From: Amoebophrya sp. A120
Taxonomy: Eukaryota; Protista; Dinoflagellata
Length of the DNA stretch: 64,000 nucleotides
NCBI GenBank assembly: GCA_905178155.1
Contig: CAJINV010000005.1
Location: 8,596,019 to 8,660,018, forward strand
Reading direction: 5' to 3'
Positions 88 to 62,352 of this stretch are shown here, piece by piece. The notes beneath the pieces were generated by a model. That model saw nothing but the letters and a program-made list of their open reading frames with translations, was not told the origin of the DNA and ran no database searches. A program made the translations under genes and the position numbers. Every line of letters begins with the position of its first letter. Position 1 is the stretch's first letter.

Positions 88-2372
88 CTACGAATGCGAT
101 GGTGCATTTGCGGCGCATACGTTGTTCTGTGCAACAAGGTCGACCTGCTCCTACGTCAGCAAGATCTTCATGTGGGAGATGTTGAACAAGCTTCTTGTAC
201 AAAGCCCAACAAGAACTTCTACTCTGAGGCAGCTACAACTTCTCACACCTCATCTTCGCAGCAGCTGGAGCTCATTCCCGAGGAGCTTCGACGCTACAAT
301 CCAGACGCGGAGTTTCACCGGACCGTGAAGTGCGAGATTGGGCTCGACAAGATTCTGAACCAAAACTCGTTCCGCCAAATAACGGACCGGGAAAAAATGG
401 TAACTAGGCTGCAAAATGCGGAAGAACGGATGCTGGAGTGCGAGGAAGTCGTGGAAGCACAACTGCAAGATGTTGAACGCGTGTGTTTAACGTCGGCCCC
501 GAAGGGGGGACCCTCGCCTGGTCGTGGGGACCACGATGAACAGGGCAAAACAACAGCAATAACAGCAATATCAAGCGAGAAGAGGACCAAGGGAAACCAG
601 AAAGTGTTCGACGCGGGGGTGGTATCAACTGCAAACGTGTCTGGTCTGGAAGAATGCATGTTTGTCATGCTTGTCTGGCATGACTCTTAAATCTGTCATG
701 CGCGTTTCCCAAGAGCCGCATTTTTCTGCCATGCAGAAACGCGGTTTGTCATGCAGAATGGGCAACACCTAGAAGGTCAGAAACTTGTCATGCTGAGCCA
801 GCACTTGTTGCCTCCTCATGATACGCCACCAAGCATCACAAGTTTATTCCCGACCCAGACACATTTGCATTTCATAGGTGGACCTGCGGCCGCACCTTGC
901 CAACCAGATCAAGCCGATGCTGATCAGCATTCCTATGAATTGCAAAAGTATCGTACTAGTAGAAATCGCATTACAAATTTCCTTAGCATGAGAAATAAAA
1001 TTTGTAATGCGGATTTTTTACCTTAAAAAACAGACTTGTAATGCATGACTGCAATTAGTACGAGTGCGATACTTTTGCGATTCATAATTCCGCAGGGCCG
1101 CCAAATCTCCTCGGCGGAGGCCTTCGAACGGCTAGTAGGAAAGTATGGAACTGCTCTCAGACGTTACAATTTCAACTGTCACACGAATTTGTCATGCGAA
1201 ATAATACTATCAACACTGCCACGATCAAGCTACTTTGCATGACAAATTCTCGACGCGGACGCGCTAAATAGAGCTAGAATGATCCGCATCAAATCTGTAA
1301 TGCAAGACGCGCAAGGTCGTGTTCCCTAGCATCATCTGTGCTACCCTTGTGCATCACAAATTCACGTATTAACAGTTGCGAATGCAACATTCGAGAATTT
1401 GATAAAAAGTGGCTCTGGGAGGACGGCCTGCAGCTGCTGCGGGGAAAGGGAATTTTCCAAACAAGGGCCACAACTAGTGCGGATTATGCAAGAAAAAAAC
1501 TGTGTAAGTGTAAATCTGTGATGCAGAAAATGCAAAACAGTCACACTTGTCATGCCAGACAGCCATGAAGTCCGATTTTCATGCGTGTTTTCCCTTACAG
1601 ACCATGCATGACAGGTTTTCTCTGTCATGTAGAGCAAATTTGTGATGCTGTCAGCCAAAGAAAGTTACACTTACACACTTTTTTTCCTGGATACGGATGG
1701 AATGATGAATAATATTAATATTGCGACCACGTACGCCTTTCAACTGGTTGGCGAGCTTTACGAGGTCGTGGAGGTCGGGCACCTGTCAAATAATCGAGCA
1801 ACTGCTGGTGCTGCCGACGTCGTCGGAGAAGGAAATAGAAAAAGTACAGATGCAGCGGGTGTTAAAGCGGCAAGCTTCTCGAAAAAACAGAGAGTCGAGA
1901 GGACTCAGGTTGGGCAGGAGGAGGACCTGGTGGTGGAATTTCAAGAAAAGACAGCGCGTCCTGCGCTCGTATCAAGTGCAAAAATGTCTGGGTCTGGATT
2001 TGTAATGCAGTTCTTCAAGGACAACAAGATCTGTAATGCATGGATACCATTGGCCAGTTTTTTTGTCGTGCTGGGTGGCAGTTTGTAATGCTAAACACGA
2101 ATGAATCGGCAAGGAGCCGAGGGAAATTCCTCATGCTGTCATGCCGTACAAGCAGCAAGTTTGCAATGCAAGTATCAGCAACACAAGTTTCCAGACCCAG
2201 ACACTTTTGCATTTGATAGCTCGCGGCGGGGAACAACAACGACAAAATTGTTGAGTCCAAGTTTCTGTTTCTGGCTTTTCGCTCGGCGGAAAAAAATCCC
2301 GATTTTTTGGAAAACAAACTGAAAACGGAACTACTGGCAATCACTACTAGTTGTATCACGACCACGCATTGA
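88..2372 (+). CDS. 3' part of a multi-exon gene of unknown function (5' end outside window), split by 5 non-canonical introns
   Basis: Removing elements 623-876, 934-1086, 1144-1443, 1485-1693 and 1970-2218, each with one 5-bp repeat, gives one open frame (...FDAGVDLRPHLANQIKPMLISIPQGRQISSAEAFERLVGKGIFQTRATTSADGMMNN...PALAAGNNNDKIVESKFLF...TTH*). The VVLCNKVD segment resembles a GTPase G4 motif, but no other GTPase motif is visible. Confidence 0.7.
623..876. mobile_element. introner family A (TAT...TGTCTGGGTCTGG TIR)
   Basis: TATCAACTGCAAAC...TTTGCATTTCATA; direct repeat GGTGG/GGTGG. Confidence 0.85.
934..1086. mobile_element. introner family B (TAT...GCAAAAGTATCG TIR)
   Basis: TATGAATTGCAAAAGTATCG...CGATACTTTTGCGATTCATA; repeat ATTCC/ATTCC. 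Confidence 0.9.
1144..1443. mobile_element. introner family H with decayed right end
   Basis: Starts TATGGAACTGCTCTCAGACGTTACAAT; repeat GAAAG/GAAAG; removal restores frame. Confidence 0.6.
1485..1693. mobile_element. introner family F
   Basis: TATGCAAGAAAAAAACTGTGTAAGTGTAA...TTACACTTACACACTTTTTTTCCTGGATA; repeat CGGAT/CGGAT. Confidence 0.9.
1970..2218. mobile_element. introner family A
   Basis: TATCAAGTGCAAAAATGTCTGGGTCTGG...CCAGACCCAGACACTTTTGCATTTGATA; repeat GCTCG/GCTCG. Confidence 0.9.
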
Positions 2373-3180
2373 AAGAGATAGTACCTCCATTACTAGCTGC
2401 ACTTGCGCAAAATAAATCATGAGAACGATGTTTATTTTTCCAAGCGACGTCGCACACGTCATCATCTGCAAAGAATTTCAGGCCGGAATAAACTGTTGCT
2501 GCCTCGACCAAAGCAGGAAACTTTTTCTGTTACCATGACGTGTTGGAAAGATCATGATCAAAATCACAGAAAGTCGAGGAAAAAGCTCGGTGTCGTGGAG
2601 TCGAAGGCGTTAATCGAAAAGATAAAGATGCAGTACCACGTAGCAGCATTTTATGTTTGATGGGAGATGGACATCGATGACAACAACAGCGATCTTGAAG
2701 ATCACGGTATTATCATGGACAACTACCCATCATCCTCCATCACAAGCCTCTCAAGAGCTACGTATACTACCGGCAACTCCATGCTTCGTCTGTATTGTTT
2801 TTCTATGAATAGAAGATGACAACACCTCCAGCGATCAAGATCATGGTGCTCTCGTGGACAAGCCATTTGAGAGCTACGCTGTTTGTTAGCCTGTCGTTGT
2901 AAGTCCAGCATCAGTCGATGTTTTGTGAAGATGACTTTGATCATTGATAGAAGTTCTTGTCCCACCAGTTTGTTGTAGCACCTTTTGCGGCACCTAAGTA
3001 CGATGTTGAATGAGTTGGAAAACAAAGATTGTTGCTGCTTTACTTCGGGAGTATCAGGTCGGAATAAATAAAGAACGGTTACTCTATCTTGTGAACCGTA
3101 TTGCGTGCTGACTCTCTATTTTTTCAACAGCACAAATCCTGCAAGGGGGCGACACCGACAGAGAATATTCAATTGTGATC

Positions 3181-6100
3181 ATGGGCGTGTTATCTTCACC
3201 TAATGCTAGTACATCTCCCGCCAGGGAAGGTGGACCTGGACGATGGCAGTACTATAATTTGGACGATAAAGATGAAGATCTGGACGACAAGAACTTTGAT
3301 ACCACCTTTGTGGTTCCTCCAGTAGGTGACTCTACTACTTCTTGCGGTTGTTCGCCAAGAACAGAAGCAGCCCTGACCTGGCGGTCGCTTTCTGACGCCC
3401 GGATATGGGTGGACTCTCAAACGTTACGTTCTCAACTATTACATGAATTTGTCGTGCAAAACTCCCTTAAGCCGCCAGATCATCAATGACTGCTTCGCAT
3501 GACAAACTTCCGCAGGGCCGCTAAAAAACAGCGTTGAAATTATCTGTGCGGCCACGTCTGTGATGCGACAGCAGCAAGCTTGGCTCTTTGACTGTTGTCG
3601 TTCCTGCATTGCAAATTCATGTGACAGTTGAGAGTGTACCTTTTGAGAAGGCCATCCCGGATTCTGCAAACGTGGGTGACGCCGGAGGACTATGCCGATC
3701 TGGTCTGGTACGGGAGTGTCAGGATCGAAATCGACAAATAAATCGCAAAACTTGTAATGCATAAAATGTAGGGCCCATAAGGCCTGTGTTGGAAAGGAGG
3801 CAAATGAGACCGATTGCAAGCCTGTTTAGCCCTAAACATGTACTGCCAGAGTAGCATGACAGGCGCAGTCTTCTTTGCCTAAACAGCATGACACGCTGGG
3901 TTTTGGTGCTCCCAAAATTTGTCATGCGTCACTTGGAAACTGAGGCTCCGACTGGTATCGATTCTCATTTTATGCATTACATACAAATTATTTCGATTTT
4001 GTTGATTTCGATCCTGACGCTTCCATATCTGGCTCGAAGACAAGGTGGAACAGGTTGCGAAAACGATCGAGATTTTTCGAGAAAGTAGTCCACCTCGTGC
4101 GTATGACAATGGCAATTCTAAAAATTCTTCTGCGAAGATTGTCCTTGAACAAGACGTGCTGGCTGAGCACAAAGCAGGTGAGGTTGGCGCAGTAGAACAG
4201 AAGAAAAACAAAAGGGTCCGAGGACAGCACTGCCTTGAAAGAATTTCCAAGCAGCTCTGGAACAACCGCGAGGTCGTGGACGAGGCAAGTGCAACTCCAA
4301 CTCCAACTCCTGTAGTTCTTACGCAAGACGACCTACTGGGCGAAGATGAGAGGACGGGGACCGCGACCACGCGGCCGGTGAGGGGGATAGCATCAAGGCC
4401 AGACCAGCACGACCTCCAGGACATCAACTCATGGGCCCGCAGCGGGCCAGCTGTGCAGCAGGAGCTACGGGATGTTGATCCTGAAGCTGTAGTCCGGGAC
4501 GAGGACCACGGGGGAGAGCTGGTGGACCGCGACGATGTTGAGCTGCCGTGGGCTGCAAGAACAGCAGCACGGCAGGGATTTTATTCCAGATATCCATATG
4601 CTAGCAGTAAAAATGCAGCAGCTGAAGGTCATGTAAGAAATGTCCAACCTTGTAGCTCTAGCTGCTGTCCCGGTGAGACGAGCTCTTGCGAGAGAACGGA
4701 CAAGAGAACCACATCATCTCCGCCGAGATCAAGTTGTCTTCAAAACTCCTTTATAAGTGGCACAACCTCAAAAAATAATTATTTGCCGTCCCAAGCCGTT
4801 GCCGATGCGATAAATGTCGTCGACCACCTGGAAGATCATGCTAGTGGAGGACTACGAGAGGACCACAAACAAGTCGTCGGGGATGGAAGTCGTAGTCGGA
4901 AGGATCTTCATGTTGACCTTCTCCGCCTGCCACTCCTCGCCCCCGCCGATTCCCATCCCAACGCCGCTTTCTGCGTTTTTTCCGATCCTTGCCTCCTGCA
5001 CCTTCCGACCTGGGAATTCCGGAATTTGGCGGCCGTCTTCGGTGGAGGATCCCGTACTGCAGCTTCAGAACATGCAGGTCTTCCTCGTACCTTGTCGGAA
5101 GGACTTATAGATGTTGCTCCTTGTCCTGCATCACAGCAGCATCGGAGGAGAAAGCTAGCCCGCAAGCATTTGCGGTCGCTGATCCAAAACTTGGTCCAGT
5201 ATGTCGTCAGCGGCACTTCTGCCGCGTCGATCAGCTGCAATGGAGAAATTCCAGCGGGAGAAATTGGCGAAGATACAGCCAGACCTTGCAGGAGCATAAT
5301 CCAGAGGAGCCACGAAGTCGAAGACGCCACGGCTGCTGCAGGCCATTATCATCAAAACGTGTTCCGAAACGGGTTTTTGATCAAGCCCAGGAACGGGCTA
5401 TCCTGTGCAAAAGTATCGTACTCGTATAATTATTGCAGTCATGCATTACAAATTTTTTTCTTGAGGTAAATCCGCATGGCAAATTGAATTTCTCATACTG
5501 GGGAACTTTGTAATGCATTAATACGAGCAGTACGATACTTTTGCAATGCATACGGGCACGACTCCTTTGGCGTGACGGCGTTTCCGATGGCAGACCTCGT
5601 CGCGGAGCTACAACTCCCGAGGGAAAAAACTACAACAGCAAAGGATCATGCGCGACGCAGGGAGGACGGACAGGGACAGCGGGAGTCGTGCCGCAGTTCT
5701 TCGAATTTTCCCACCAAAAAATGTACTTCTAGAGCCGCCAACATGATGAACATGCCGCGTCCACCTCCGAAAGACACTACAGATGGGTTAACATGTCGTT
5801 CGGTAGTTGCACCACGCCGGCCTGAGCAGCAGGATGCAGCCCACCAGCAGCACGAGGACCAGGCTGGCGGTCAGCACTTCTTGTTCCGGCCGCGTACAAT
5901 AAAAGTTCCTGCCTCGCTAACGGACCGGGTGTTCACGGCAATCCAGACCGCTTTCTGCATTCGAGGCGGGACGACGGGGACCACGAACAAAAACAGCAGA
6001 ATCCGTGACAGCTGGTGTCGGGAGAACTGGCAGCTGAGTCAGGTGCCGGATGGAGTGGTCCTACAGCCCTTGTTTGTCACCAGACTATTGTCTAGTACTG

Positions 6101-7758
6101 ATAATGGTAATGGTGAAGAAGATCAAGTTCAAGAAGGAGATTATGCAGGAAGCGGGACCACGCCTCACGGGCTTCACGCTGCGTCCACCTCAGCACAGCT
6201 GAGCTGCTCCACCGCTGCACCACGGGGTATGGATTGCACAGGTACCGTGCTACAACTTCTAGGGGATGAAAAGATCGCATTTAGTGCTACTTCTACTTCC
6301 CCAATCGAGATAAAAGTGCACGTGGTGGGGTATCAAAAGGAAAAAGTCTCCCTCCCCATATCGAAACGAAAATTTTTGATGCTGATTTGTGACCACAAAT
6401 CAGCCTGCGTACAAGGCAAACGGGACCCACATGGCGCATTGTACAGCGAGTGTGTCACCATGCGTTTTCGCCTATGTCAGACCTGTTTCTCATGCTCAGC
6501 TGCTACCCAGATGCGTACCCAAATGGGCTTAGATAGAATATGCCGAAAAGCTCTTGCTGCAATACAGTGTACACAAATCCAGCAACACGAAAGGCAAAAA
6601 AAAAAAATCCAGCAACACAAATTGTCTTTTGAATACGGGGTGGCGGCTTTTTTCACTTTGATATGGGGAAGGAAGTGGTTGGCGCGACCGTGAAGCAGTA
6701 CCCGCCGGACATACTTTGGATCGACGGCACGGGGAAGTATGGGAGTGTCAGGATCGAAATCGACAAAATCGAAAAACTTGCAATGCATGAAATGTACGGC
6801 GCGCAAGGTCTGTGTTGGGAAGAAGGCAAATGAGACCGATTGCAAGCCTGTTTAGGGCGGGAAGAAGACGCGTTGCCAGAGCAGCATGACAGGAGCAGTC
6901 TTCTTTGCCCAAACAGCATGACAGACTGGATTTTGCAGCTCCCGAAATTTGTCATGCGCCACTCGAAAACTGAGGCTCCAACTGGTATCGATTTTATGCA
7001 TCACAAATTTTTCGATTTTGTTGATTTCGATCCTGACGCATCCATAGGAAAGTGTGGGTCTTTAACCGATGGAAGCTGGACGACTCTAAGGCACGCGACC
7101 GGATTATGGGAGTGTCAGGATCGAAATCGTCAAAGTTACAATAGTTTGCCATGCATAAAATGCAGGGCACGTAACGCCTGTATTGGGGAACATGCAAATG
7201 AGACCCATTGCAAGTCTGTTTAGGGGAAGCCGATGCGCTGCCAGAGCAGCATGACAGGAGCAGTCTTCTTCGCCCAAACACCATGACAGACTGGATCTGG
7301 GTGCTCCCGAAATTTGGCATGCGTCACTTGGAGACTGAGGCTCCAACTGACATCGATTTTGTGCATTGCAAGTTATTTCAACTTTGTCGATTTCGATCCT
7401 GACACTCCCATACGGATTTTTCTCCAGTTCCTTGCAGACCAGCTACGGCGGTACTGGAGTGGAACCTTCGTGTATCGCAAAAAAAAATTTTACAGTTACA
7501 CATTGTCTTGCAGGCCAAGCAAGACAGACAAGTTCTGTCATGCCGGATATGCATAGGAGCCTCGTTTCGTATGTGTTTTCCCGTAGGATTTCTGCATTGC
7601 AAGTTTTCACTCTCATGCAGAGAAATTTGTGTTGCCGAAATCACTACAAGTGTGTAACTGTGACACTTTTTTCGTGGGATATCGCGGCAAAAAGTTTGGC
7701 TTTGGTGGAGGGGATAAACAAGATTCGGAGGAGCAGCTCTCAGTATGATCCAGAGTAA
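3181..7758 (+). CDS. multi-exon gene, large low-complexity protein of unknown function; 5' junction unresolved
   Basis: Exons from about 3687 onward join in frame after removing 3709-4027, 5399-5552, 6331-6663, 6738-7046, 7105-7412 and 7473-7681 (ending ...NKIRRSSSQYDPE*). The join across 3404-3681 to ORF 3175-3489 is one base out of frame, so the start is uncertain. Confidence 0.6.
3404..3681. mobile_element. introner family H, degenerate
   Basis: Starts TATGGGTGGACTCTCAAACGTTAC; CCGGA repeat; internal GCATGACAAA motif; right TIR decayed. Confidence 0.5.
3709..4027. mobile_element. introner family C (TATGGGAGTGTCAGGAT TIR)
   Basis: TACGGGAGTGTCAGGATCGAAATC...GATTTCGATCCTGACGCTTCCATA; repeat TCTGG/TCTGG. 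Confidence 0.9.
5399..5552. mobile_element. introner family B
   Basis: TATCCTGTGCAAAAGTATCG...CGATACTTTTGCAATGCATA; repeat CGGGC/CGGGC. Confidence 0.9.
6331..6663. mobile_element. introner family D
   Basis: TATCAAAAGGAAAAAG...TTTTTTCACTTTGATA; repeat TGGGG/TGGGG. Confidence 0.85.
6738..7046. mobile_element. introner family C
   Basis: TATGGGAGTGTCAGGATCG...CGATCCTGACGCATCCATA; repeat GGAAG/GGAAA. Confidence 0.9.
7105..7412. mobile_element. introner family C
   Basis: TATGGGAGTGTCAGGATCGAAATCG with a perfect inverted copy at the far end; repeat CGGAT/CGGAT. Confidence 0.92.
7473..7681. mobile_element. introner, family F-like
   Basis: TATCGCAAAAAAAAATTTTACAGTTACAC...GTGTAACTGTGACACTTTTTTCGTGGGATA; repeat TCGTG/TCGCG. 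Confidence 0.8.
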
Positions 7759-9239
7759 ATTCATCATTTCCGCCGTACTGCACGAACTACACGAGGCCAT
7801 TATAATACAAGCACGGTTTCTGCACGGCAAAACTTGCCTTCAGTCCTGAAGATATTCTATCAGCATGACAACTGGGACTGTCGGGTAAGTTGCAGCTGGT
7901 GACACTTGTCATTCATTTTGTCCGTGTCGTGCGGGAAGAAATTTGTATTGCATAGTAGTACTTCTAGAGAAGAAGGAAAGAGAAGTCGGGCCAGCGAAGA
8001 GAACAGTAGTCCACCGGGGCAACAAGAAATTCTTGTCCGTGATAAAAATCATCGTTTCGCTCTTCATAGGCAAAATGCAAAAGTATCGCACTCGTAGTAA
8101 AAGCAATAGTACGTAGGCATGCATTACGTTTCCGACGACCAATCAGCATTACAAATTACATTTCTAAAAACGGTCTGAGCCAATTTGTAATGGAATCCAT
8201 ACTCGTGCGATACTTCTGCAATGCATACCTCCTGAATGCCGCCTGGATTGGCTGGTTTCTAGCGATTGCCGCCCAAGATTGGGGGAGATCACGTACCAGG
8301 GCGCCGCTTTCGCGACGAATCAGAAACTATATCACGGTACACATCAACTCCACCTCCCCCGGCTACTTTTGCAGTTCATAATGAGACAATACGACCGTCC
8401 GCGCCTGGACATGTCACAACTCATGCACAAGAACAAGCTACATTCGCTAGTACTCTGACCCCTGTCTCTACTACTATCAATCTAAGAAACCCTGTTGCTG
8501 CTTATGCCATAGTACAAATGAGGAGGAGGGAGAGCAGTTTGTTGTGCCCTCTCATAAACTATCCAAAAGCATGGCCGCCAAACTGTGGGAATTCTTGTGA
8601 CAAGCTGCAACTTTGTTTATAATACAACAGTTCGCAGATTTGATGATTCTTGCCGAGAGCGACGTGCGCGCCGTGTGAAGACCGGGGCAGGCGCCTACAG
8701 AAAAATCGAGTGTTGGTGCGTCTACAGCTAGATTTACTGCAGTAGCAGGAGCAGCAGCTGCTTTCGATGATGGAGTTCTATTTCCAGCACAACTTCTAGT
8801 TGTAGTGTGAAAATCATACAAAAAATTCGAACAAAATCTCAGGTCGAGCTCGAGCCTCACGGCTCTCTTGCCGAAATTGTACACAACGTACGGGATCATG
8901 TTGTTCATCTTGTTTCTACAATCGGTCGGTAACGATGAAAAAGTGATCCGAAACGAAAATTTTTGCAGCTTGAAAGTGATCATGATCAAAATCGAAATCG
9001 TTCGTGTAGGGAGTTGCATCGATTTGCCACGCAAAACTACCCTAAGCCGCCAGACGCACGATGGCGATCAAGCTGTCTCGCATGACAAATCTCCGAAGCT
9101 GCGCTAAACAGCATCTAAAGCTTTTCCAAATATGGGACGCGAAAGCAGCAAGCTTGCTCCTTTGAGTGTTGCTGTTCTTGCATGTTACATGCAAGTTCAT
9201 GTAACAGCTGATAGTGTAACTGATTTGAGAACGCCATAC

Positions 9240-15457: not shown

Positions 15458-15496
15458 ACAACATCTTCCCCGTTCCGGATCTTGGTCATCGTCTCC

Positions 15497-42452: not shown

Positions 42453-45227
42453 ATGTTGCGCTCCATGGTCTTCCCCACCTCGCGCGGAGGTGCAGTGTTT
42501 ATTTCTCTTTGCGCTGTTCTTTTCGCCGGGCAGCATTACAACTCCGTCCAGGCTGTCACGTTGCGTGCGTCATCTGCCTCGCCATCTGCAGATCCTGACC
42601 TCGCCTACATGCCCCCTGAGATGATGGAACAATACAGGCAATACCAATACCAAGAAAACCAAAAGATATCAACGGCAAATGTGCGTGGTTCTGGAATAAG
42701 AAGAATGCAGAAGACATTTGTGACGCGCCAGTTTTTCCGTCGTGACACAGGCCTATTAGTATCACAGGTTTATAATAACATGAGTCGATGTGACTAGAGT
42801 CCAAATGTCTAATCCGCATGAAAAATTGCGCCCTCTTGCGGTGACATTAAGTAGGCGCGTTTAAATTTTGACGCTGGCCATGCATGACAGATTTTGACAT
42901 GATGGAAAATTCGTATACACAAAAATAGCATCTTCATTCCAGACCGAGGCTACATATTTGCGACGCATAACCGTGGCAGCCCGTAACACATTCTGACCTT
43001 GATAAGTATCATGCGTAAACAAAACGTCCCCACGTCGGCTGCACAGTGAAGATGGAAATTCCGATGCACAAAGCAACAAGCCTTGGCTCATGAGTACAGT
43101 TTTAAGCTGATGGGACGAGGACCATTTGCATCGTGTGTAGCTGCTAGTGATCAAGCCGCATCACAAAAGATGATCGATCACCCTGGTCTGATTCTAGCAT
43201 GACAAACTTGACGTATCAGACAGCATGGGAAAAAAAAATGCTCCTCATGGGGCAGGGGCTGCGCAGTGAGACATTTTAGGCATGCAGATTTGTCGAAGAC
43301 AACAAAGCTGCAGTGGGGACGTTTTTACGCAGGATAAGGAGACCTATTTGGTCCACCACCACCCCGATCCGGCGCTCCGGGCGCTCCGGCGCCAATTCCC
43401 CGGCAACAAGATCGTGAAAAAGGAAGTGGACGAGGGCACCCTTATAAGTGCAACCCCAATCGAACCTACAGAGGAGTCTGCCCTAGTGAAGAAGGAGCTG
43501 GAACAACTCCGTGACGACATCGCCAAAGCATCGCGATCATTGCCAAAGCCGGAAGAGCTACGTGATACAAGCAAAGTGGACAAGGAGCTAGAAGAACTCC
43601 GTCAACGCCTTCCCAAAGAATCGGCGGAGCTGGAAAAACTAAGTGCTGCGTATCAACTGCAAACATTTCGGGTCTGGGACGAGAATGCGAGATTTCGATT
43701 TGTCATGCTAGTCTGGCATGACTCTGAGCTCTGTGTTGCATTCCCGCGAAGAGCTCCTCCTCCCTGTCATGCAAAAACGCACTTTGTCATGCGGAATAAG
43801 AATATTACGCAACTCAGAACCATGAAAAAAACTTCAACTTGTCATGCTTGGCAGCGCATCATAGTGAAAGAATTCACTACTCCCTTTCTTGCATTACAAG
43901 TTAGTTTAATATTCCAGACCCAGACATATTTACAATGCATACTGAGGCGAAACAATCACAAAAGATTCACGCACGTACTGAAATGATGCCATATGAATCC
44001 GTTCGGGCGGATTGGAAGAAGGCACAAGAACAGCAAGAACTCGTGAAAAAACTCGAGACGCAGGAGGCCGAATTGGCGAAAAAATTGAGGCAGCTGCAAG
44101 ATTACAATTCGAACGTGTTGAGGCAGCGGCAAGATTACGCAGTGCAAAAGCATCGTATAAATTCGAGACAGAGACTCGTACTAGACCACTACAAGAACAT
44201 TGGTCACGCAGTATAGTTTTTTAGACAAAAAATGAAATTTGTTATGCTGTTGCTGTGCTATTTTTTCGCAATATTAAAAAAACAGCAGATGATGATCATG
44301 ATGATGATCTTCATGTACTGATGTGTCTGTCATGCTGCAAATACTGCGATTGTTGCGACGAGCCTTACTTGTATACGGTACTTTTGCACAGGATGAAAAG
44401 AGGGAAGCGGCGGAACAAGACCGGAAATATAACCTGAAAGAACTGGAGAGCCAGCAGGCCAAATTGACGATACAGTTGAAGCAGCTGCGACATTACGCAC
44501 TGGCACCGCAAAAGCATCGTATAAGTCCGATACTTCTCGTAGAAGACCACTACAACATAATTGGTCGCGCAGTACAATTTTTTGGACAAAAAATGGAATT
44601 TGTCATGCTGACGCTGTGCCATTTTTATATCGCAATAAAACTACAGCAGATGATCTTCATCGTCATATGCTGTATCTACTGTCATGCTACAAAAATTACT
44701 GTGATCATTGATTGTTGCGACGAGTGTTACTTGTGCGGTGCTTTTGCACAGGATGAAAAGAGGGAAGCGGCGGACGAAGGGGAATTGCCTGAGAAGGATC
44801 TCGCCCTGCGGCAGGAGGAGGAATGGCAATTGCTTGACGAGGAACAGTATGAATTGCAAATATGTCTGGGTCTCCTGGAAGATTGCAACTTGTCATGCTT
44901 TTAAATCTGAACCATGCAAGGTTCCGTGTTGCATGAGTGCCATCAAATGCTGTCCGCTTTCGAGTCTGGAGGGAGGGACTTTCTCATGCAGGATAGGCAT
45001 GTTGACAGTGACCTCACAGAGTCTGATGTCATGCTGTGTCCCGCATTTTTCCAGACCTCATGGGCGGTCATGGAAAACCTCCTGCATGACAAGTCTACAC
45101 TCCTCCAGACCCAGACATTTTTACATTTGATAAACAGGATTCCGCCATGCGGGAACTTTTCCAGCAGGCTCGCGGCAAGTCATCTTCAAAAGCACGGCGG
45201 GAGGGCAAGAAGAGAAGTACTAAATAG
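42453..45227 (+). CDS. secreted coiled-coil protein gene, paralogue B
   Basis: Signal peptide MLRSMVFPTSRGGAVFISLCAVLFAG; in frame after removing 42667-42969, 43007-43336, 43651-43941, 44136-44395, (44494-44755) and 44848-45132, each plus 5 nt; ends ...KARREGKKRSTK*. Confidence 0.72.
44848..45132. mobile_element. introner family A, absent from paralogue A
   Basis: Repeat AACAG/AACAG; single AACAG at the homologous site 38543-38547. Confidence 0.92.
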
Positions 45228-50824: not shown

Positions 50825-51076
50825 TATCAAAAGTAAAAATGTCTGGGTCTGGAAACTTGTGATGCTGGGCGGCGTCTCATGATGAGGCTACAAATGCTGG
50901 CTCAGCATGACAAGTTTCTGAGCTCCTAGGTGTTGCCTCTTCTGCATGACAAACTGTGCTTCTGCATCACAGAAAAACGGAGCTCTTGGGTAACGTGCAT
51001 GACAGATTTAAGAGTCATGCCAGACAAGCATGACAAACATGAATTCTTCCAGACCCAGACATTTTTACAGTTGATA
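50825..51076. mobile_element. introner family A in a non-coding repeat
   Basis: Repeat CTGCT/CTGCT; related sequence near 40640-40655 lacks the element. Confidence 0.88.
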
Positions 51077-52495: not shown

Positions 52496-55400
52496 ATGCA
52501 GGGTTCTTGTTCCAGGCAAAAGGGTCTACTTCTACGCGAGGTTATCAAATGTAAAAATGTCTGGGTCTGGAAGGTGGGTGCAAGACATCTCATGCAGGTT
52601 CAACATAACAGATCAGGTCTGGAACGCAGGTTCTAGCATGACAGATTCTGTGAGGTCTGTATCATGCCCATTCTGCATGAGAGACTCACTCCAAAGTTTG
52701 TCAGAAATGGCCATCTTTTGGTAATCACGCAACACAGATTTTTGCATGATCCAGACTAAGCATGACAAGTTGCATTCCTCCAGACCCAGACACTTTTACA
52801 TTTCATAGAGGTCCTACAACACCAAGCACAGCCGCGTCAGCTGTGTATCAAAAGGAAAAATCCCCCCACCCCATATCGAAATGGAAATCTGTGATGCGGG
52901 ATTTGTGTACACAAATCGGCTTTGTATTGCAGGAAGGCATCGCGGCCAGATCCCCTGGCTATGTAGGGGCGTATCGGTCTAGTTGTTCGGCATGGCAAAC
53001 GGCTCCCCTTTAGGCCCAACAGCATGACAAATCGCCTCCATAATGGGGGCGAAGCTTTTGCCCTTGTCTTCTTGCAAGACAGATGTGATTTTTTGTGACC
53101 TCAAATCAGCAACACAAATTTGCGGAACATGCCTTTTCGATATGGGGAGGGGGGATTTTTCCTCACCATACTGCGTAGTAGTATTTTTGCGAACTCCATT
53201 ACCTTCTCTGTGGCTGTCATCGCACTGCTCTACGGAAGTGTCAGGATCTTCGAAATCGACAAAGTTCGAGTTGAAATTTTAATCTGTGACGCATAAGATG
53301 CCACGCAGAGAAGTAAGTAGAAGTGCGACCCTATGTATTGCAGACAGTACATGTACGAGGGGGGCAACCGCTTCGAGTCCCGCTGAGGGGCAGGAGTTGG
53401 ACAGCTGACTACCATGACAGAATGGAGCTCCTTTGCCTTAAACAGCATGACAGATTTGCTTCCGGGGCGGGGAAAGTTTATATGTCTTGCGCCGACCACC
53501 ACTATGTATAAAGTGAAAACGAGAAAAATTGGTGCTGTCGATTTTACGCATGACAAATCAACTTTGTCGATTTCGGTCCTGGCGCTTCTATATGCTCCTG
53601 CTCTCAGATTGTTCCACGACGACTAATCCCACGGCTACCCTTGCGTGGGCCCTGACCCACAAAATAACTTCTAGTCCGCGGGCTGGATCACCACTTGTCG
53701 CCGACGGGCCAAATGCTGGTCGCCGCGCCGCCCGGATACCGGGCACCTTATGCAATACAAATTTCCCGTACATGTACAACATGCATCACAAATTTCAAAA
53801 ATTTGGAGCGTACTAAAACCTGTCATGCTAAACTAGGATCGAAGCCAAGTTTTGTCATGCAGAGACCGCATTTGTACGTCGTGTGCGGGAAATTTACTGT
53901 GGATACACGTTTGCTGCGTGGCATTCAGATCCAGAAGACCTACCTGGCGTACAGCGTGCCAGGTTCTCGCACGTACCGTGTGCAAAAGTATCGTACTCGT
54001 ATAAGTGCAAGTCTTGCATCACAAATCTTGTTCCCAAGCCAAAGCAGCATTACAAATTTTATTTCTCATGCTGAGGAAATCGAAATTTGTAATGCACTTA
54101 TACGAGTACGATACTTTTGCATTTTAAAGCACGGTAGTCACAATAACTTTCCCCCGCAGTACGCACCTGTGACGCGCGAGGACCTCCGCCAGGGCCCACC
54201 CCCCCCTGCTGGCGGTGGAGGAGGAGCATTCCTGGGCCAGTTTTCCTTTCTCGGGGGCCTCGCGGGCCGCGACAGCAACAGCGACCATGTAGTGCCGATT
54301 CCGTCTTTGCAAGAAGCCCAAACCGCCCCGCCGACCACTCAGTTGTACTACGATGCAAATGCGGGGGGCCCGCCCCCCGGGAGTCGTGTAGAAGCAGTAG
54401 AGCCGCGAATATCCACGAAAAAACACCCATCCCCATCCATTTTTCGCATGACAAATACGTGGAATTTATGCATGTTTTGCATGACAAATTGGATGGGGAT
54501 GGGTGTTTCTTCCTGGATAGCGAACCATATTCCCAGGGTTCGCGGCGGCGGGTGGAGAGTATGAACTGCAAAAGTATCGTACTCGTATAAATGCATGACA
54601 AATTCCCTCAGCATGAGAAATGAAATTTGTAATGGGAATTTACCTTGAGAAAAAAATTTGTAATGCATGACTGTAATACGAGTGCGATACTTTTGCACAG
54701 GATAGAGAGGAGCCACAGACCATCCTGCCACCGCATCTGCAGCATATCAAGTGCAAATATGTCTGGGCCGGGAAGATTGCCAGCAGGTTTGTGATGCAGA
54801 TTTTGCAGGACCCATGATGCCTGTGATACATGCCCTAGCATCACAGTTTTTTGGAGGGCTTCCCGATGCACATTCCGCATGAGAAATGCCCTCACCACGT
54901 AGCACAAACTGGACTCCTTTTGCACTTGCTGGTCATGCAATACAATTTTTTTCAGAATCCAAAGACAACATCACAAGTTGCAATCTTTCAGACCCAGACA
55001 TATTTGCAATGCATGCAGCACTTACGTGACCAACAGCAGCAAATGCAGATCGCTCAGGCACCAGCTGGTGGGCGTTATGATCCTTCTTCTCCAACCTACT
55101 CGTCGTCGTCCCCCAGCACTACCGCTGCGGGCGCAGCTATGGATGTGTCAAAGTTGAAATCGACAAAGTTGAACAAATAACTTGTAATGCATAAAGTCGA
55201 TACCAGTTGCAAGCCCAATCTCTAAGCGGCGCATGACAAATTTGAGTAGAGCCGAAATCCGGTCTGTAATGCTAATGCTGCTTGGGTAAGGGAGACGCCT
55301 TTTGTCGTGCTACTTTAGCAGCTCTATTTCTACCCCGAAACAGGCTTACAATCTGCCTCCCTCGCCTACTCTGCAATACAGGCACTTTCTGCGTTGCATT

Positions 55401-58400
55401 TTATGCATGACAAACTTTTTTCAACTTTGACGATTTCAATCCTGACAGCTCCATAGCAGCTCTGAGCCAGTTGTGGAAACGGTGCTGCGGAACGAACATG
55501 CAAGCGCTATCCTGTGTAAAAACTTCCCCACACCATAGTTGTCATGCAAATCCGCATGCTTAAAATGTTTCTCATTCGGAGCCCCATGAGAAGCATTTTC
55601 TAATGCTGTCTTGAAATTTGTCATGCTCCAATCAGCATGAGATACTAGATCTGTAATGCTGCTGAACTAGTTCAAACAGCACGAGACTACGCGTCCAAAT
55701 TTGTCATGCGAAACAGCCAAAGCTTGTGGATTTGTCTAGCCGATTCTCCATCTTGACTATGGGGTGGGGACGTTTTTACATAGGATAAGCGCAACACACC
55801 CAGGACTTCTCCGCCCGACCAGGGCCACCTGCAACGGAGTTTCACCAACTCCACGTGGACGACCCACGCCTCCGCGGTCCTCGTCCGGGCGGGTCGGTAA
55901 CCATAGCAGCGGCCCGGGCAGCTGCGGCCCGGGTGGCTGCGGCCCAGGCGGCGGGCAACATGCAGGTTTTCGATCCCTCGGTAGGACCTTTACAAGGAGC
56001 AGACCCAAGTAGTAATATGACCCGGGCTCTTATCCAGGAAAAAAAATGTGTAAGTGTAAGTTTGTAGGTTGAACAGCATCACAAATTCGTTTTTGCACTA
56101 CAGGGAACAAAACCTGTCATGCGCAGCTAGTAAGTGGAAACACGTACTATGATAGTAGTCTATGACGCACTTCCAGCATAACAAGTGTGACTGTTTTGCA
56201 TTTTCTGCATCACAGATTTACACTTAGACAGTTTTTTTCTTGCATAGCTCTGTCGCCGGAGGAGCATCAGTATTTGCTTCTCACGAACGACGCGTATGCG
56301 GACCGGCTATACAGTGCAAAAATATCGTGTTCGTTGTATTGCAATCATGCATTACAAATCTTTTTCTTGAGGTAGATCAGCACTACAAATTTCATTTCTC
56401 ACGCTGAGGAGATTTGTAATGCATTTTTTTATACGAGTGTGATAGTGATGCTTTTGCATTGCATAACAGCATTACAAAAGCAAGTACTCCGTGTTCTTCG
56501 GGGGCGGTATGCTGTGCGGCCTGGCCACGTATCATTTGTAAAAACGTCCCCACCCCAGAGTCAAGATGAGGATTTTGCAGCACAAACCTTCAAGTTTTGG
56601 GAGCCACACATGACAAGCTCCAGGCTGTAGTGTATGACAGTTTAATAGCAAGGAAGTCGCATAACAAATCCATCTCCTTATCCTGTTTACAGCATTACAA
56701 GTTCCAAAACACCATGGGAAATGCCTCTCATGGGGATGCGCATTACACATGCTCTTGGTCTTGTGCTTGCAGATCTGCATGACAACTCTGGGGTGGGGAT
56801 GTTTTTACACAGGATACCACGGTCGCGGGCATCATCTGGGCGGCGACCATGGAGCCGGACTTGCGGCCCTTCTGTATCCTAAGTCAAAACGGGACCCACA
56901 CCCCATAGTCAATCAGTTGGGAAATCTGCTAGACAAATCTACAGCCTTTGGTTGTTGCGCATGACAAATTTGGGCTCGACGCAATGTAGAAGTCCTGTGT
57001 AGCTGCTAGAGAAGCAGCATCACAGATCTACGAAATCATGCAGATTCGAGCATCGCAAATCTTAAAAAACCACGATAAAAAACTTCTCATGGGGCTCCGC
57101 ATGGAAAACATTTTAAGCATTCAGGCTTGCATGACAAGTATGGGGTGAGCACGCTATTACACAGCATATTCTGTCCAGTCTCGCTCAATCCGGAGTACAA
57201 GTCGCTCTTTCGCCATCCGCACCGGTGCCTGGTGTTGCCGGAAGCGGTTGCAGACTCGTGGTACACCAGCAGACTGCTGCAGTTATCAAGTGCAGAAGTA
57301 TCGTACTAGTAGTAATTGCAATACAAATTACTTCAGCATGACAGAGGAAATTTGGCATGCGGGTTTTTTACCATAAAAAAGCAATTTGTAATGCATGACT
57401 GCGATTACTACGAGGGAGTACGATACTTTTCCATGTGATAGCAGTCCATCGACACTTATTCCGACGCGTATAGCGACTCCTTTTGGAATATCCTGTGTAA
57501 AAACGTCCCCATACCAGAGTCAAGATGGGAAATCTGCTAGACAAATCAACCAGGTTTGGTTGCTTCGCATGACAAATTTGTCCTCGTAGTGCAATCCTGC
57601 TTAAGTAGCTTAGCAACATCACAGATCTAGCGCATCATGCTGATTCTAGCATCACAAGTTCCACGACACGACTAGAAAACGCCTGTCATGTTGGGGCTCC
57701 GCGTGAGAAACTTTTTCGGCATGCAGATTTGCATGACAACTCCGGTGTGGGGACATTTATCGTCAGGATATAGAAAAACACGCTGCCGGAGAAGGAGAAA
57801 ATCTACGAACTGATTCGGGACCTTCGCGACAACAACATCAACGAGAATCTGAATCTGGATGTGATCCAAAGCATCTTGGTGAAAGCCGAAGAGGATCAGC
57901 AGGCCGTGGGAGTGCAACTCGTAGCATCTCCTTCATCGTCTTCGCCAAGCAACCCCGTCATGGCCACCGCGCCGGCACTACGCTTGTTGTCATTGTCGCC
58001 CTCGTGGCCCAGTGCCGGCCTTCGCGTCGTGCCAACATCCTCCGCATCTTCAGGCTCAAGCAGCGCCAGCGCCGGTTCTACTGCAACTAGAGCTACCCTT
58101 TCGTCTTCCGTAAAGGGTGGGGTCGCATTGACCCCCCCGAAGCAGCCGATCTTGGCCCGTTCCCTGACCACGCAGGACCCGAATCCACCGATCGCGCTAC
58201 CGACATTAGCACAACAACAGGAAGTTGTAGAACAGCCTGGACAAGGAACCGTGATGGGCTCCTTGCCCAGCAGCACGGCCGACGGCGACGTCACAGGTGG
58301 ATCTGCAGTTGTAGCCGCCAGTCCGCTTAGAAGTGCCTTGGCTGCTGGTGCAGTTCATCCGGGCGGCAGGACAGCTGCTATCGGGGATGCCACGCCCCCC

Positions 58401-61400
58401 TTGCTGCAGACTGCGGGTATGCATTGCAAAAGCATCGTACTAGTATAAATCGCATGACAAATCTCCTCAGCATGAGAAATAGAATTTGTAATGCGGATTC
58501 AAGTTGAGGAAGAAATTTGTAATGCAGGACTGCAATTACTACGAGTACGATACTTTTGCACAGGATAGCGGGCAACCCGGCACAAAACACGCTCCCCGTG
58601 ATGAATTTGCCGCAAATGCTAATCTATCGAATGCAAATAGGGTCGTCTGGAAAGAATGAGATTTGTGATGCTAGCATTCGATCACGCAAAAATCTGTGTT
58701 GCAAGAGAGGCAACAGACACTGCTCAGACTGTTGCCACCCGGAGATGGCATTATTTCTCATGCAGTTTAGGCATAAGGAGAAGCAAACCTATGCGAAGGC
58801 TGTGATGCTAGAGCATGCGTCAGAGGCATCGGGAGCCATGTACAATTTGCATCACAAAAATGTTCCAGACCCAGACATGTTTGCACTGGATACGATGAAC
58901 GAACTCGTTCTGGACAAGATCACGCTCGATCTGTGGTATGCGACTCTGAGCTATGCATTGCAAACATGTCTGGGTCTGGATTTGTGATGTGGGACTCAAA
59001 GGGCGATAAGATCTGTAATGCACGACGAACGCGATTGGTCAGGTTTTTTGTAAAATGTTAAATGCGAATGAATCCACAAGAGCTTTAGAGAAACTTCTCA
59101 TGCTGTTATACCGCACAGACATGAAGCTGCAGCCAGTCTGTAACTAATGCAGGTATCAGCAACACAAGTTTCCAGATGACACAGATCGGTATTTGCAATG
59201 CACATGAGCGAGCGGCTGTCGGCTCCACCGGAGTACGAGAAGCTACATGACGGCGAGAAAACCCAAATTCCGGACGACCTTGCGCAAGAGGTAGGGACTG
59301 CAAAAGTATCGTACTAGTAGAGCTCGCGTGACACATTTCCTCTGCATGAGAAATGAAATCTGTAGTGCGGATGTAACTGAAGAAATAGATTTGTAATGCG
59401 GGAATGCGATTCTTAGTACGATTGCGATTCTCTTGCAATGCATAAGAGGTGCTGTATGGCGAGAACGCGGAGGCGGAATACTGGATGCAGGAGCTTCTCA
59501 CCAAAGCCCTCGTATGCATTGCAAATATCGATCTGGGTCTGGAGACAACTTGTCATGCTAATGTCCGAATGATAGTACGTCGCAAACTGCATTGCGGAGC
59601 CGCGCATGACAACTTTCTGGGTGGGGGCTACGTGTAGCGTTAAGCGTACCATCACAAATTGCCTTTTTGCATGACAAACAAGTGGCATTGTAGACTAGCG
59701 CAACAAGCATGACAGACTTTTCTGCATTGTCGGCCGAGCATGACAAACGTGCACTCCTCCAGTGATGACCCAGACAAATTTGCACTGGATACCTCGACGA
59801 GTCTTTTGACTCGCGGGCGTCCACCACCAGCAGTGCAGCCACAGTGAGCTCCGAGAAAGCTTTTGACATCCTGAAGAAGTCCATGCTGGCCGTATCCTGA
59901 GGGAAAATGTCCCCGCCCCAGAGTTGTCATGCAAATCTGCATGCTCAAAATTTTGTCATGCGGACTGGTTGGTACTTTTCTTGGGGCGACTTGCCGTGGT
60001 AGCGCTCGCCTTTTGTATGATGAGGTCGCCGAAAGTGCTTCCTCGCCCACCCCCCGGGGAGGGGATCCTTGACCTGTGCCGCTGGGAGCGGGTGTCCACT
60101 ACATTATGATGATGATGATGATGATGCGGAGCCCCATAAGAAGCATTTTCTAGTCGTGTTTCGGAATCTGTCATGCTCCAACCGCCATGATATGCTAGAG
60201 CTGCGATGCTGTTGAACTAGCTAAGTAAACAGGATTACACTACGAGACCAAACTTGTCATGCGCTACAACCAAAGCTGGTAGATTTGTGTAGCAGATTTC
60301 ACATCTTGACCCTGGGGTGAGGACGTTTCTACTTAGGATAGGCCACTAAACCAGGCAGTGATGTTGACCAACAACCACCCCCGCAGAAACTTCGTTTCCT
60401 TCTCTACTGGCTGTTTCACGGAGAGACATCCTGGCCGAGAGGAGGATCGTCTGGTGGATCCAGTAGCGAAGCGGGACAGCAAACTCCTGCTCCGTCGGCT
60501 GACGGAGCAGCCGGGGGAACTACAACGAGTGACGAGGAAAAATGCGACTGGTCCAAGTTGCTTGACAACCACTGGGTGAGTACGCAAGCGTGGTACCACG
60601 AGGAGCGCATGTTCAACCGGTGCTATGAAAATTTGCTGGACAAGTTGGGCAACCACTTCCGCCTCACGAACGAACTGGAATACGAAACCGAGAAAACCAT
60701 CCCAGCAAGAAGCGCAAGCACAAGCGGAGCAGGCCAGCTGGCGTCTTCAGAAGGGGCGAAGCACACCGTCCGTGTGCGCAACTCGCAGCACCACATATCA
60801 CAACAGAAAATCTCCCCTGCCCATATCGAAACGGAAATCTGTGGTGCGGGATTTGTGTACACAAATCGGCTTTGTCATGTAGTAGAGGACTGCAGGCAGA
60901 TACAAAGCCGGAGCAGGGGCGTTTTGGTGTAGGCACCTAGCAAGGCAGGCATATCCTCCGTAGGCCCTACAGCATTACAAATTGCCTGCAGGACGCGGCG
61001 AGGTTTTTGGGTTTGCCTGCTTGCAATACAGAGAAGATTTGTGGTCTCAAATCAGCATCACAATTTTCAGAAGTGCCCCGGTTTGGTATGGGGAGGGAGG
61101 ATTTTTCCCCACAATACCACATCTCGCCGACCATGATCGCCTGGGCATTGACGGGTGGTGACATCTCCGCGAAATTTCAGCAAATCGACGTGGAGGCCCG
61201 GTTGAAATCCGTTTTTCGTGTGTACCAGCAGGCGGAACAAGGCACAGAAAAAACGGGCCAAAAACTGTTCAACTCAGTCTTTCTAGCGTTTCCGAAAGCC
61301 GCAGGCGGCGATCCGATGTTTTTTGGCACCTACGACGATGGGAAATGGTACATCAGTTGATGACGCACCACTAAACACTTGTTTTTCCGTGCGTAGTTTC

Positions 61401-62352
61401 TTGCTCCGCATGACAAACTTGTGCCTCTAAGCGGATTTATGCATGACAGTTTCCATTTTCATATTACACCTAAATCAATACAGCTTCGTCTTCTACACGA
61501 AAGTGGAGTCGATTCATTTCGTGAAAGATGAAGAGAAGGACACCCCGCTATCCACAGAGACCCATCCCCATGCCCATTCATTTTTTGCATGACAAACAGT
61601 GGACTTTATGCATATTTTGCATGGCAAATTGGATGAGGATGGGCGTTTTTTCCTGGATACCCGGCGATGAAGCACTATGAGGAGTTCACCCACGGTAGCC
61701 ACGACTATGCCTTGCAAAAATTGACACTGTCGCTGTATCGTGCGCAGTACTATCATGGTGGTAGATCGAGAGATGATGGCACATCTACTTAACTTAGTAC
61801 AAGAAAAAGAAAAACGCGCAAATGTTGAAAGTCGATCATGCCGTTCGGAAAATACATGCTAGAACCTACCTATTCACACGCCACAGGCATCTTCTTCTAT
61901 GCTGATATAAGAACTTTCTCGATCTTCTTGTATACATAGACCAATGCGTCGATACAACTTTTGCCTCTCCTCGTCATAGCCTACTCCTGACCACGATCGG
62001 GCTGGAAATGGGGCCAGCATCAGCAAGCGAGCAGGCTCCCGCAGAGACGACCTTTGCCGACCGCTGGACCGTGTATACAATCGCGCCGCAACCGGAGAAG
62101 AAGCAAGGAGCCGCGCCTTCAAACACGATGCCCGCAGTCGTGGACGCGGCCGGCAGAAACGATCTCGCACCCCCACTACAGTCCAGCGGACAAGAAGAGG
62201 ATCCCGTGATAGGTGTAGCAACCGCAGCGAGAGTGGCGCAAGCGGTGGGCCGCGACGATGCTGGATCGGCGGCATCGGCTGCGCAGGTTTTCGCGACCCC
62301 TTCCTCATCGTCACAAATGCCAACGTTGCCGCACCACGGACCGATGGGGTAG
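52496..62352 (+). CDS. 1217-aa protein of unknown function (N-terminal hydrophobic segment, one further TM-like segment), 27 exons
   Basis: Introners at 52543-52807, 52846-53170, 53231-53592, 53749-53905, 53974-54128, 54410-54519, 54560-54704, 54745-55015, 55138-55455, 55508-55787, 56031-56246, 56308-56465, 56530-56816, 56875-57168, 57284-57440, 57489-57770, 58418-58567, 58625-58892, 58952-59204, 59292-59444, 59513-59791, 59893-60340, 60796-61116 and 61549-61659, plus GT-AG introns 61348-61483 and 61758-61939. The remaining 3654 nt read open from ATG to TAG. Confidence 0.82.
52543..61659. mobile_element. cluster of 24 introners (families A-G and others) within one gene
   Basis: Each has TAT(or variant)...ATA TIRs and a 5-bp direct repeat, e.g. 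GAGGT, TGCTC, GCACG, GCGAA, GAGAG, CAGCA, GCAGC, AGCGC, GCTCT, CCACG, TTCTG, GCAGT, GCGGG, TGAGC, AGAGG, CCTCG, CCACA. Confidence 0.92.

Follow-up and report, generated by a model that had tools for sequence, protein, structure and literature searches.

Inverted-repeat elements that interrupt exons of Amoebophrya sp. A120 are missing from mature RNA together with five adjacent nucleotides

The 64,000 nucleotides (nt) of the Amoebophrya sp. A120 genome analysed here, referred to below as the window (contig CAJINV010000005.1, positions 8,596,019 to 8,660,018), show exons broken every few dozen bases by short repeats. These repeats are elements bounded by terminal inverted repeats (TIRs), typically starting with TAT, ending with ATA and flanked by a 5-nt direct repeat. 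What is removed is exactly element plus 5 nt, which restores the reading frame, and the elements are absent from mature RNA. They are very probably the introner elements of A120, i.e. non-autonomous DNA elements that have inserted in exons and are taken out of the RNA as element plus 5 nt. The core of this finding, including the TAT-N7-AAA grammar, was published in 2021 and is not novel (Farhat et al. 2021, BMC Biol 19:1; PMC7789003). That study described in A120 non-canonical introns with inverted repeats of 8-20 nt, direct repeats of 5 nt, hairpins and an A120-specific TAT-N7-AAA motif, occurring as thousands of copies in families alongside GT-AG introns, and detected no family-specific inverted-repeat motifs. 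Inverted repeats, direct repeats, the TAT-N7-AAA start and transcript-backed non-canonical removal are all found in the window, with no difference in kind; what is added here is a tentative cut register, an inner motif, the lack of an orientation bias and a terminal consensus of ca. 15 nt.

Extension by BLAST from a library of confirmed elements, followed by reading of the leftover candidates by eye, mapped 57 full elements from 623 to 61659 and 4 truncated copies (Table 1), close to the figure of about 60 given in an initial annotation that was based on the sequence alone. The full elements range from 110 to 999 nt and, together with the truncated copies, cover 15.0 kilobases (kb) or 23% of the window, whose composition is ordinary (GC 0.41-0.66). 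They form 7 multi-copy families, besides a small number of singletons that are in part related to the families, compatible with the roughly 10 families first proposed. An inverted-repeat scan that made no assumption on the termini returned 16 strong pairs with an exact 5-nt direct repeat, 15 of which had TAT...ATA ends. When TAT...ATA pairs with a strong terminal inverted repeat were searched for directly, 84 were found, the 5-nt repeat being perfect in 28 and matching at four of five positions in 10; 30 first-order Markov shuffles yielded on average 1.4 such pairs, none of them with a perfect repeat.

The termini follow a common grammar, with TAT at 104 of the 114 ends and an exact TAT-N7-AAA at 72, and in most elements the terminal 30 nt give inverted-repeat scores of 12-30. 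The first 15 nt of all families conform to the consensus TAT-S-N-A-N-T-G-C-A-A-A-A-R, beyond which the families diverge. The flanking repeat is identical at five of five positions in 39 elements, at four in 13, at three in 3 and at two in 2; among the 57 elements 54 distinct repeat sequences occur, somewhat GC-rich and with a base preference at no position. Both the TAT...ATA ends next to an arbitrary 5-nt repeat and the lack of AG/GT bias had been described in the initial annotation. Six equivalent cut registers were checked for each element, and a canonical one (GT-AG, GC-AG or AT-AC) is possible in only 6 of the 57; U2-type borders, i.e. GT-AG or GC-AG, account for 4 of these and AT-AC for 2, leaving 51 elements with none.

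Removal is documented by a contig that resembles complementary DNA (record 9 of run X3, a run presumed to be RNA; 1130 nt, depth 51). The contig maps to the window in three pieces, 23956-24219, 25201-25359 and 27873-28004, corresponding to contig positions 1-264, 401-559 and 999-1130. Between the first two pieces 845 nt are gone, which equals four elements (254+143+267+161 = 825) plus 4x5 nt, and between the second and third 2074 nt are gone, which equals seven elements (1796), a GT-AG intron at 26076-26318 (243) and 7x5 nt. In total, 11 elements and one GT-AG intron are missing, to the base. The same contig confirms a micro-exon of 21 nt (25020-25040), of which bases 25021-25034 are seen between 24748 and 25201 and the rest in the adjoining pieces. 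Other micro-exons between adjacent introners measure 33 nt (52813-52845) and 35 nt (54525-54559 and 54710-54744).

Independent evidence was provided by a protein. Exons were searched singly, joined exon models being used solely for frame counting, and the exon at 4018-5397 (460 amino acids, aa) gave exactly one match among 1.84 billion representatives, P0001 (961 aa), which is 100% identical to the query. When mapped onto the window, P0001 implies ten introns: eight correspond to an element plus 5 nt, one to a GT-AG intron (7743-7958) and one to a degenerate family 2 element (8064-8229). The GT-AG introns of P0001 and of the X3 contig thus occur in the same transcripts as introners, as had been claimed. 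No homologous protein was found, within the length range searched, for a 213-aa exon (57777-58415) of the gene that carries 23 elements.

Frame restoration by removal of element plus 5 nt was also borne out at the scale of whole genes. With all 57 elements and 5 nt each removed by script, frames stay open for 1039 codons across 23 junctions (52472-61357), 908 codons across 7 (3112-7755) and 394 codons across 5 (37-2369); at elements 56308 and 58625, whose repeats have decayed, the frame is held only with +5 or +8. A test of open reading frame (ORF) length at single junctions had favoured +5 at only 18 of 39 and was later replaced by the whole-gene test; its poor result is explained by long chance ORFs in GC-rich DNA and by the many neighbouring elements that were then unannotated. 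Two exceptions to the rule had been listed. The first, at 3404-3681, was due to a boundary error, the element being 3404-3656 with an ATC end, a CCGGA repeat and a 258-nt intron in P0001. The second stands: at 34416-34780 the flanks match at two of five positions and removal of element plus 5 nt closes the frame after four codons.

These lengths also bear on whether nearby cryptic GT-AG sites are spliced, with the geometry of repeats and duplications being incidental, an outcome that the initial annotation had raised against its own reading. The canonical-compatible register of 6 of the 57 elements would leave some room for this, but for 11 elements of the X3 contig and another 8 of P0001 the length removed is exactly element plus 5 nt, and 51 of 57 have no canonical register at equivalent positions. 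At the 19 junctions covered by a transcript or a protein, cryptic GT-AG splicing is refuted, and for the set as a whole it is almost certainly wrong.

The elements are retained in the DNA. In contigs of run X1 (genome-like, the longest of 95 kb) the depth across seven exon/element borders is 43-52, equal to that of the unique flanks, and no precise-excision joint is listed for them. Short elements with defined termini that interrupt coding sequence and are precisely removed are also known as the internal eliminated sequences (IESs) of ciliates, the removal of which takes place in the DNA, whereas here the DNA keeps the elements at full depth. Excision in a part of the cell population, with the spliced contig deriving from rearranged DNA, would be permitted in principle by the TIRs and the target-site duplication, and X3 is not formally recorded as RNA. 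The X1 border depths and the zero depth of X3 over intergenic bins nevertheless make excision from DNA very unlikely, and a GT-AG intron is missing from the spliced contig as well. Removal at the RNA level, as the initial annotation had it, is the reading on which the X3 contig and P0001, both without elements, and the X1 contigs, which keep them, agree; absence from a DNA subpopulation, the contrary outcome it had named, was not seen in X1.

Two observations concern other RNA-like material. X3 contigs of low depth (4-14, compared with 51 for the spliced contig) lie inside elements at 25736-25936 and 27404-27601 and may represent unspliced precursor, introns after excision or other copies. RNA reads of run X9, from another strain with the same species label, carry the family 1 inverted repeat (window 25366-25399) with different flanks and interior, indicating that related elements are transcribed in that strain too; the reads of X9 and of X10, a run that is likewise from another strain, leave the window uncovered except for a 34-nt inverted repeat and hold no junction information.

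Where the flanking repeat is imperfect, the copy that survives in the messenger RNA reveals the cut register. For element 24221 (TTGGA/TTGAA) the X3 contig keeps the upstream base at position 4, for element 7473 (TCGTG/TCGCG) P0001 likewise keeps the upstream base at position 4, and for element 25041 (GATAT/GATAC) the X3 contig keeps the downstream base at position 5. Tentatively, a single register fits all three, in which the intron runs from 1 nt before TAT to 4 nt after ATA, placing the junction between positions 4 and 5 of the repeat. Folds of three elements with their flanks have terminal stems that begin exactly at TAT/ATA (z -8.6 to -9.7). The interior of family 1 is asymmetric, and its copies occur in both orientations (8 versus 6), all in plus-strand genes and without insertion bias; both orientations are missing from the same X3 contig. 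Since both are spliced, the removal signal must be symmetric, a property that the inverted repeats alone possess. None of the 23 copies in the long gene has lost either inverted repeat, whereas the truncated copies are found outside coding sequence, the pattern expected from selection for splice competence. From the free junctions, the equal orientations, the stems with z of about -9 and the seemingly fixed register we infer that removal is guided by structure. Of the proposal that transposons resembling miniature inverted-repeat transposable elements (MITEs) leave the RNA by a structure-guided pathway next to GT-AG splicing, the MITE-like nature (see below), the RNA level and the coexistence with GT-AG introns hold, and the structural guidance keeps this indirect footing.

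In the mechanism that we propose, a short DNA element would insert into an exon with duplication of a 5-nt target site; in the pre-mRNA its two inverted repeats would pair into a long terminal stem that brings the two junctions next to each other, and the cuts would be placed by their distance from the base of the stem, not read from exon or intron sequence. Our best guess for the machinery would be a relaxed, U1-independent spliceosome aided by the hairpin, with about equal chances for a separate endonuclease and ligase. The latter would act without the spliceosome, a helix-measuring endonuclease cutting at the stem base and an RNA ligase joining the exons, as suspected for the nonconventional introns of euglenids; taken as an explanation of its own, it falls somewhat short of an even chance. 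It would account for the free junction sequence (54 distinct repeats of 57) and for symmetric signals that function in either orientation, the inferred spacers (1 nt 5' and 4 nt 3' of the stem) resemble the Euglena code, and euglenid introns leave as circles by a machinery that is unknown; U1 small nuclear RNA (snRNA) was moreover not found in Amoebophrya (Farhat et al. 2021, PMC7789003). However, there is no candidate enzyme, a nearly complete set of spliceosomal proteins is present (PMC7789003), and MITE-derived non-canonical introns of Fritillaria are reportedly processed by the U2 spliceosome, according to the summary in PMC11282704. In addition, 15% of the canonical A120 introns show the same layout of inverted and direct repeats (PMC7789003), which suggests one machinery for both intron classes. 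U2 snRNA was not found in the genome assembly with Rfam RF00004 and a degenerate pattern, and had been reported solely from RNA assemblies (PMC7789003).

The likeness to euglenid nonconventional introns (PMC12501133, PMC3935182, PMC11282704) extends to non-GT-AG borders, base-paired ends, duplication-like junction repeats, a suspected MITE origin, conventional introns alongside and cut sites placed asymmetrically, at fixed distances, beyond the paired motif. The Euglena code, which is genetically defined, places the cuts 3 nt before CAG and 5-6 nt after CTG. There the stem is a short CAG/CTG motif and a purine is favoured at the start of the downstream exon, whereas here stems of 10-30 nt or more start from TAT/ATA and the proposed spacers measure 1 and 4 nt. 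The euglenid signature (CAG at +4 to +6 pairing with CTG at -8 to -6, and a downstream purine) was not seen in the window, where the termini are TAT/ATA and no base is preferred at the repeat positions. The two lineages are unrelated, and circular products are known for Euglena.

All families also have in common an inner motif, TGTNATGC. In the form T[GCT]TNATGC / GCATNA[GCA]A it occurs 13 times per kb inside elements compared with 1.0 per kb outside, and is present in 55 of 57 elements and in every family, often as arrays of 3-5 copies (for examples see 24258-24268, 26376-26385 and 27766-27778). It was not found in the text or supplement of Farhat et al. 2021 (PMC7789003), the figures of which are not searchable. 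Its orientation is not tied to the transcript strand and some spliced elements have it in one orientation only, which argues against a strand-specific signal in the RNA such as a branch site. For the same reason GCAUNACAA, considered as a branch site, is a weakened candidate. Judging from its distribution, the motif may act at the DNA level, for instance as subterminal binding sites.

The MITE-like nature of the elements is well supported by their TIRs, fixed 5-nt duplication, small size, lack of coding capacity, dispersed copies and nesting. For the family 1 copy at 26344-26600, at least 3452 candidate places were counted across the 115.5-Mb genome, and all 40 family 1 copies that were scored are full length (1-257), lie on many contigs, share 85-94% identity and end exactly at the termini. 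One insertion is nested, a family 6-like element (L015:6433-6639, repeat ATTCT) sitting inside a family 4-like one (L015:6280-6770, repeat GTTAG), both with perfect repeats. No meaningful ORF was found in any element, including family 1 variants of 1.0-1.4 kb; the long variants (37165-38163, L044:1064-2366 and L045:1447-2855) have a non-coding interior of ca. 800 nt in common, and a series of genomic copies that end at the same right-hand point suggests derivatives by internal deletion. The 999-nt element was considered as an autonomous remnant and rejected, the longest ORF of its 1.3-1.4 kb relatives being of 164 aa, with no Rfam match.

As for the mobiliser, the elements might be moved by one DDE-type enzyme that makes a 5-nt staggered cut and would recognise the shared terminal consensus of ca. 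15 nt and possibly the subterminal motif. It is the shared consensus, together with the subterminal arrays, that points to such a single enzyme, a reading at odds with the published position, which rules out mobilisation by a transposase in A120. A search with the integrase core domain rve (PF00665), chosen because a 5-nt duplication fits that enzyme class, gave 30 matches in the genome, part of which were inspected, right flanks not included. The inspected matches were rejected as mobiliser, being Copia (rve-SH3-RVT_2) or Gypsy (RT-RNaseH-H2C2-rve) elements or a single-copy rve gene of 713 aa. One of the Copia elements (G000:C2:4741512-4748565; L029/L033/L038) is a long terminal repeat (LTR) retrotransposon of ca. 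7 kb with 368-nt LTRs and a frame of 1986 codons; with at least 4 copies at 97-100% identity, it looks recently active. Gozashti et al. 2025 (PMC12130899) list A120 and report an A120 family flanked by inverted repeats with integrase-like ORFs. No published solution for the excision machinery or the mobiliser was found in a literature search on Amoebophrya. That a fixed asymmetric register (1 nt before TAT, 4 nt after ATA) applies to every family and orientation, that excision is by helix measuring, shared or convergent with that of Euglena, and not by classical GT-AG splicing, and that a single mobiliser serves all families is, taken together, a rather unlikely proposition.

Several points weigh against the reading of the elements as mobile introners removed from RNA by a hairpin-aided machinery. 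The RNA origin of X3 is presumed and not formally recorded, the element at 34416-34780, which may or may not lie in coding sequence, breaks the rule of element plus 5 nt, and the cut register rests on 3 junctions. To our knowledge, there is no precedent for a spliceosome that is indifferent to the first and last nucleotides of the intron. No transposase with TAT..ATA termini and a 5-nt repeat was found among the inspected rve matches, and Farhat et al. (PMC7789003), who report no DNA transposase from A120, argue against mobilisation by such an enzyme.

Among other systems, introners of Micromonas, Aureococcus and Polarella (Huff 2016; Gozashti 2022, 2025; Roy 2023) likewise have TIRs and target-site duplications and create introns by insertion, but they carry or co-opt GT-AG sites, which the elements described here do not. 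In Fritillaria borealis (Henriet et al. 2019, as summarised in PMC11282704) transposon insertions have also given rise to non-canonical introns at genomic scale; according to that summary these favour AG-AC and AG-AT and an adapted U2 spliceosome is invoked, whereas no dinucleotide preference is seen here.

Other repeats of the window were noted besides. A segmental duplication of 1116 nt (30906-32021 and 52698-53810, 99.6% identity) includes two introners and a fragment of another; the imperfect repeat CTGTG/CTGCG is present in both copies (elements 31054 and 52846), and the copy at 31 kb falls outside the long open frame. Two palindromes (16413-16636 and 29407-30578, with 58-nt and 39-nt arms) do not follow the grammar of TAT/ATA and 5-nt repeat. 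What appears to be a decayed Copia-like retrotransposon occupies ca. 9900-18250 on the minus strand, with RVT_2 and SH3_retrovirus matches at 12951-14546 (-), direct repeats of ca. 220 nt (9905-10130 and 18000-18230) that resemble LTRs, and no introner inside. Finally, a GC-rich tandem array with a period of 281 nt, ca. 10 copies and internal palindromes (46719-49450) is preceded by a 19/38-nt repeat (45931-46670); in this region several frames are open for more than 1000 codons, with no Pfam match.

Table 1. Elements mapped in the window, with family assignment, and ordinary introns of the same transcripts
Feature	Position	Strand	Repeat or flanks	Remarks
Introner family 1 (TAT..GTCTGGGTCTGG)	623..876		GGTGG/GGTGG	open frame 37-2369 (5 junctions)
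Introner family 2 (TAT..TGCAAAAGTATCGTACTCGTA)	934..1086		ATTCC/ATTCC	open frame 37-2369
Introner family 8	1144..1404		GAAAG/AAAAG (4/5)	open frame 37-2369
Introner family 6	1485..1693		CGGAT/CGGAT	
Introner family 1	1970..2218		GCTCG/GCTCG	
Introner family 8	3404..3656		CCGGA/CCGGA	3' end ATC (ATA mutated); 258-nt intron in P0001
Introner family 3 (TATGGGAGTGTCAGGATCGAAATCG)	3709..4027		TCTGG/TCTGG	start TAC; 324-nt intron in P0001
Introner family 2	5399..5552		CGGGC	159-nt intron in P0001
Introner family 5	6331..6663		TGGGG	338-nt intron in P0001
Introner family 3	6738..7046		GGAAG/GGAAA	314-nt intron in P0001
Introner family 3	7105..7412		CGGAT	313-nt intron in P0001; fold z -8.9
Introner family 6	7473..7681		TCGTG/TCGCG	P0001 intron 7472-7685 or 7473-7686 only
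Ordinary GT-AG intron	7743..7958	+		P0001 mapping, unambiguous
Degenerate family 2 introner	8066..8227		3/5	P0001 intron 8064-8229; indel at 5' end
Introner, singleton	8330..8556		AACTA/AACTA	232-nt intron in P0001
Introner family 1	24221..24474		TTGGA/TTGAA	missing from X3 contig, left piece ends at 24219
Introner family 2	24563..24705		CCTCT	missing from X3 contig (coordinate arithmetic)
Introner family 1	24748..25014		GGAAA	missing from X3 contig
Introner family 2	25041..25201		GATAT/GATAC	X3 contig reads ...AGATAC
Introner family 1	25366..25627		CGCCC	missing from X3 contig
Introner family 5	25675..25996		TTTGC	missing from X3 contig
Ordinary GT-AG intron	26076..26318	+		required for X3 contig arithmetic to close exactly
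Introner family 1, interior opposite to 24221	26344..26600		CTACA	inverted repeat 30/30; fold z -8.6
Introner family 2	26688..26850		AGCTC	missing from X3 contig
Introner family 3	26913..27231		GCTGC/GCAGC	missing from X3 contig
Introner family 3	27317..27640		TGCGA	missing from X3 contig
Introner family 2	27725..27873		GAATC	missing from X3 contig; fold z -9.7
Introner family 5, in 1.1-kb duplicated segment	31054..31378		CTGTG/CTGCG	identical to 52846-53170
Introner family 3, in duplicated segment	31439..31803		TGCTC	copy of 53231-53592
Family 4-like element without flanking repeat	34416..34780		AAACT/GCTCT	inverted-repeat score 17
Long (999-nt) family 1 variant	37165..38163		CGGGA	307-codon frame open across
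Introner family 4	43007..43336		ATAAG/AGGAG (3/5)	open frame 42971-44213
Introner family 1	43651..43941		CTGCG/CTGAG	open frame 42971-44213
Introner family 1	44848..45132		AACAG	open frame 44308-45224
Introner family 1	50825..51076		CTGCT	coding context not clear
Introner family 1, first of 23 in gene	52543..52807		GAGGT	1039-codon frame 52472-61357
Introner family 5	52846..53170		CTGTG/CTGCG	1039-codon frame
Introner family 3	53231..53592		TGCTC	start TAC
Introner, singleton	53749..53905		CACCT/CACGT	
Introner family 2	53974..54128		GCACG	termini TAC..AAA
Introner family 7 (110 nt)	54410..54519		GCGAA	
Introner family 2	54560..54704		GAGAG	
Introner family 1	54745..55015		CAGCA	3' end ATG
Introner family 3	55138..55455		GCAGC	
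Introner family 4	55508..55787		AGCGC	
Introner family 6	56031..56246		GCTCT	
Introner family 2	56308..56465		CCGGC/ACAGC (3/5)	only +5 (or +8) keeps 393 + 646 codons open either side
Introner family 4	56530..56816		CCACG	
Introner family 4	56875..57168		TTCTG	
Introner family 2	57284..57440		GCAGT	
Introner family 4	57489..57770		TGGAA/TAGAA	
Introner family 2	58418..58567		GCGGG	
Introner family 1	58625..58892		TAATC/CGATG (2/5)	only +5 (or +8) keeps 713 + 326 codons open either side
Introner family 1	58952..59204		TGAGC	3' end ACA
Introner family 2	59292..59444		AGAGG	start TAG
Introner family 1-like	59513..59791		CCTCG	
Introner family 4	59893..60340		GGCCG/GGCCA	
Introner family 5	60796..61116		CCACA	
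Introner family 7, last element	61549..61659		CCCGC/CCCGG	
Family 2-like element, cut by window edge	1..119			BLAST to element library and sequence reading
5'-truncated family 8 copy, outside coding sequence	9014..9237			
Right part of family 1 element, cut at edge of 1.1-kb duplication	30906..31015			
5'-truncated family 3 copy	39999..40291			

For the question how introns are recognised when the junctions hold no sequence of their own, the window offers a clean and dense test bed, with a gene of 23 elements, several imperfect duplications from which the exact cut register can be established and both orientations of family 1 in one transcript. Should the fixed register and the common inner motif prove general in the genome, they would narrow down, in a concrete and testable way, what the excision enzyme and the transposase can be.

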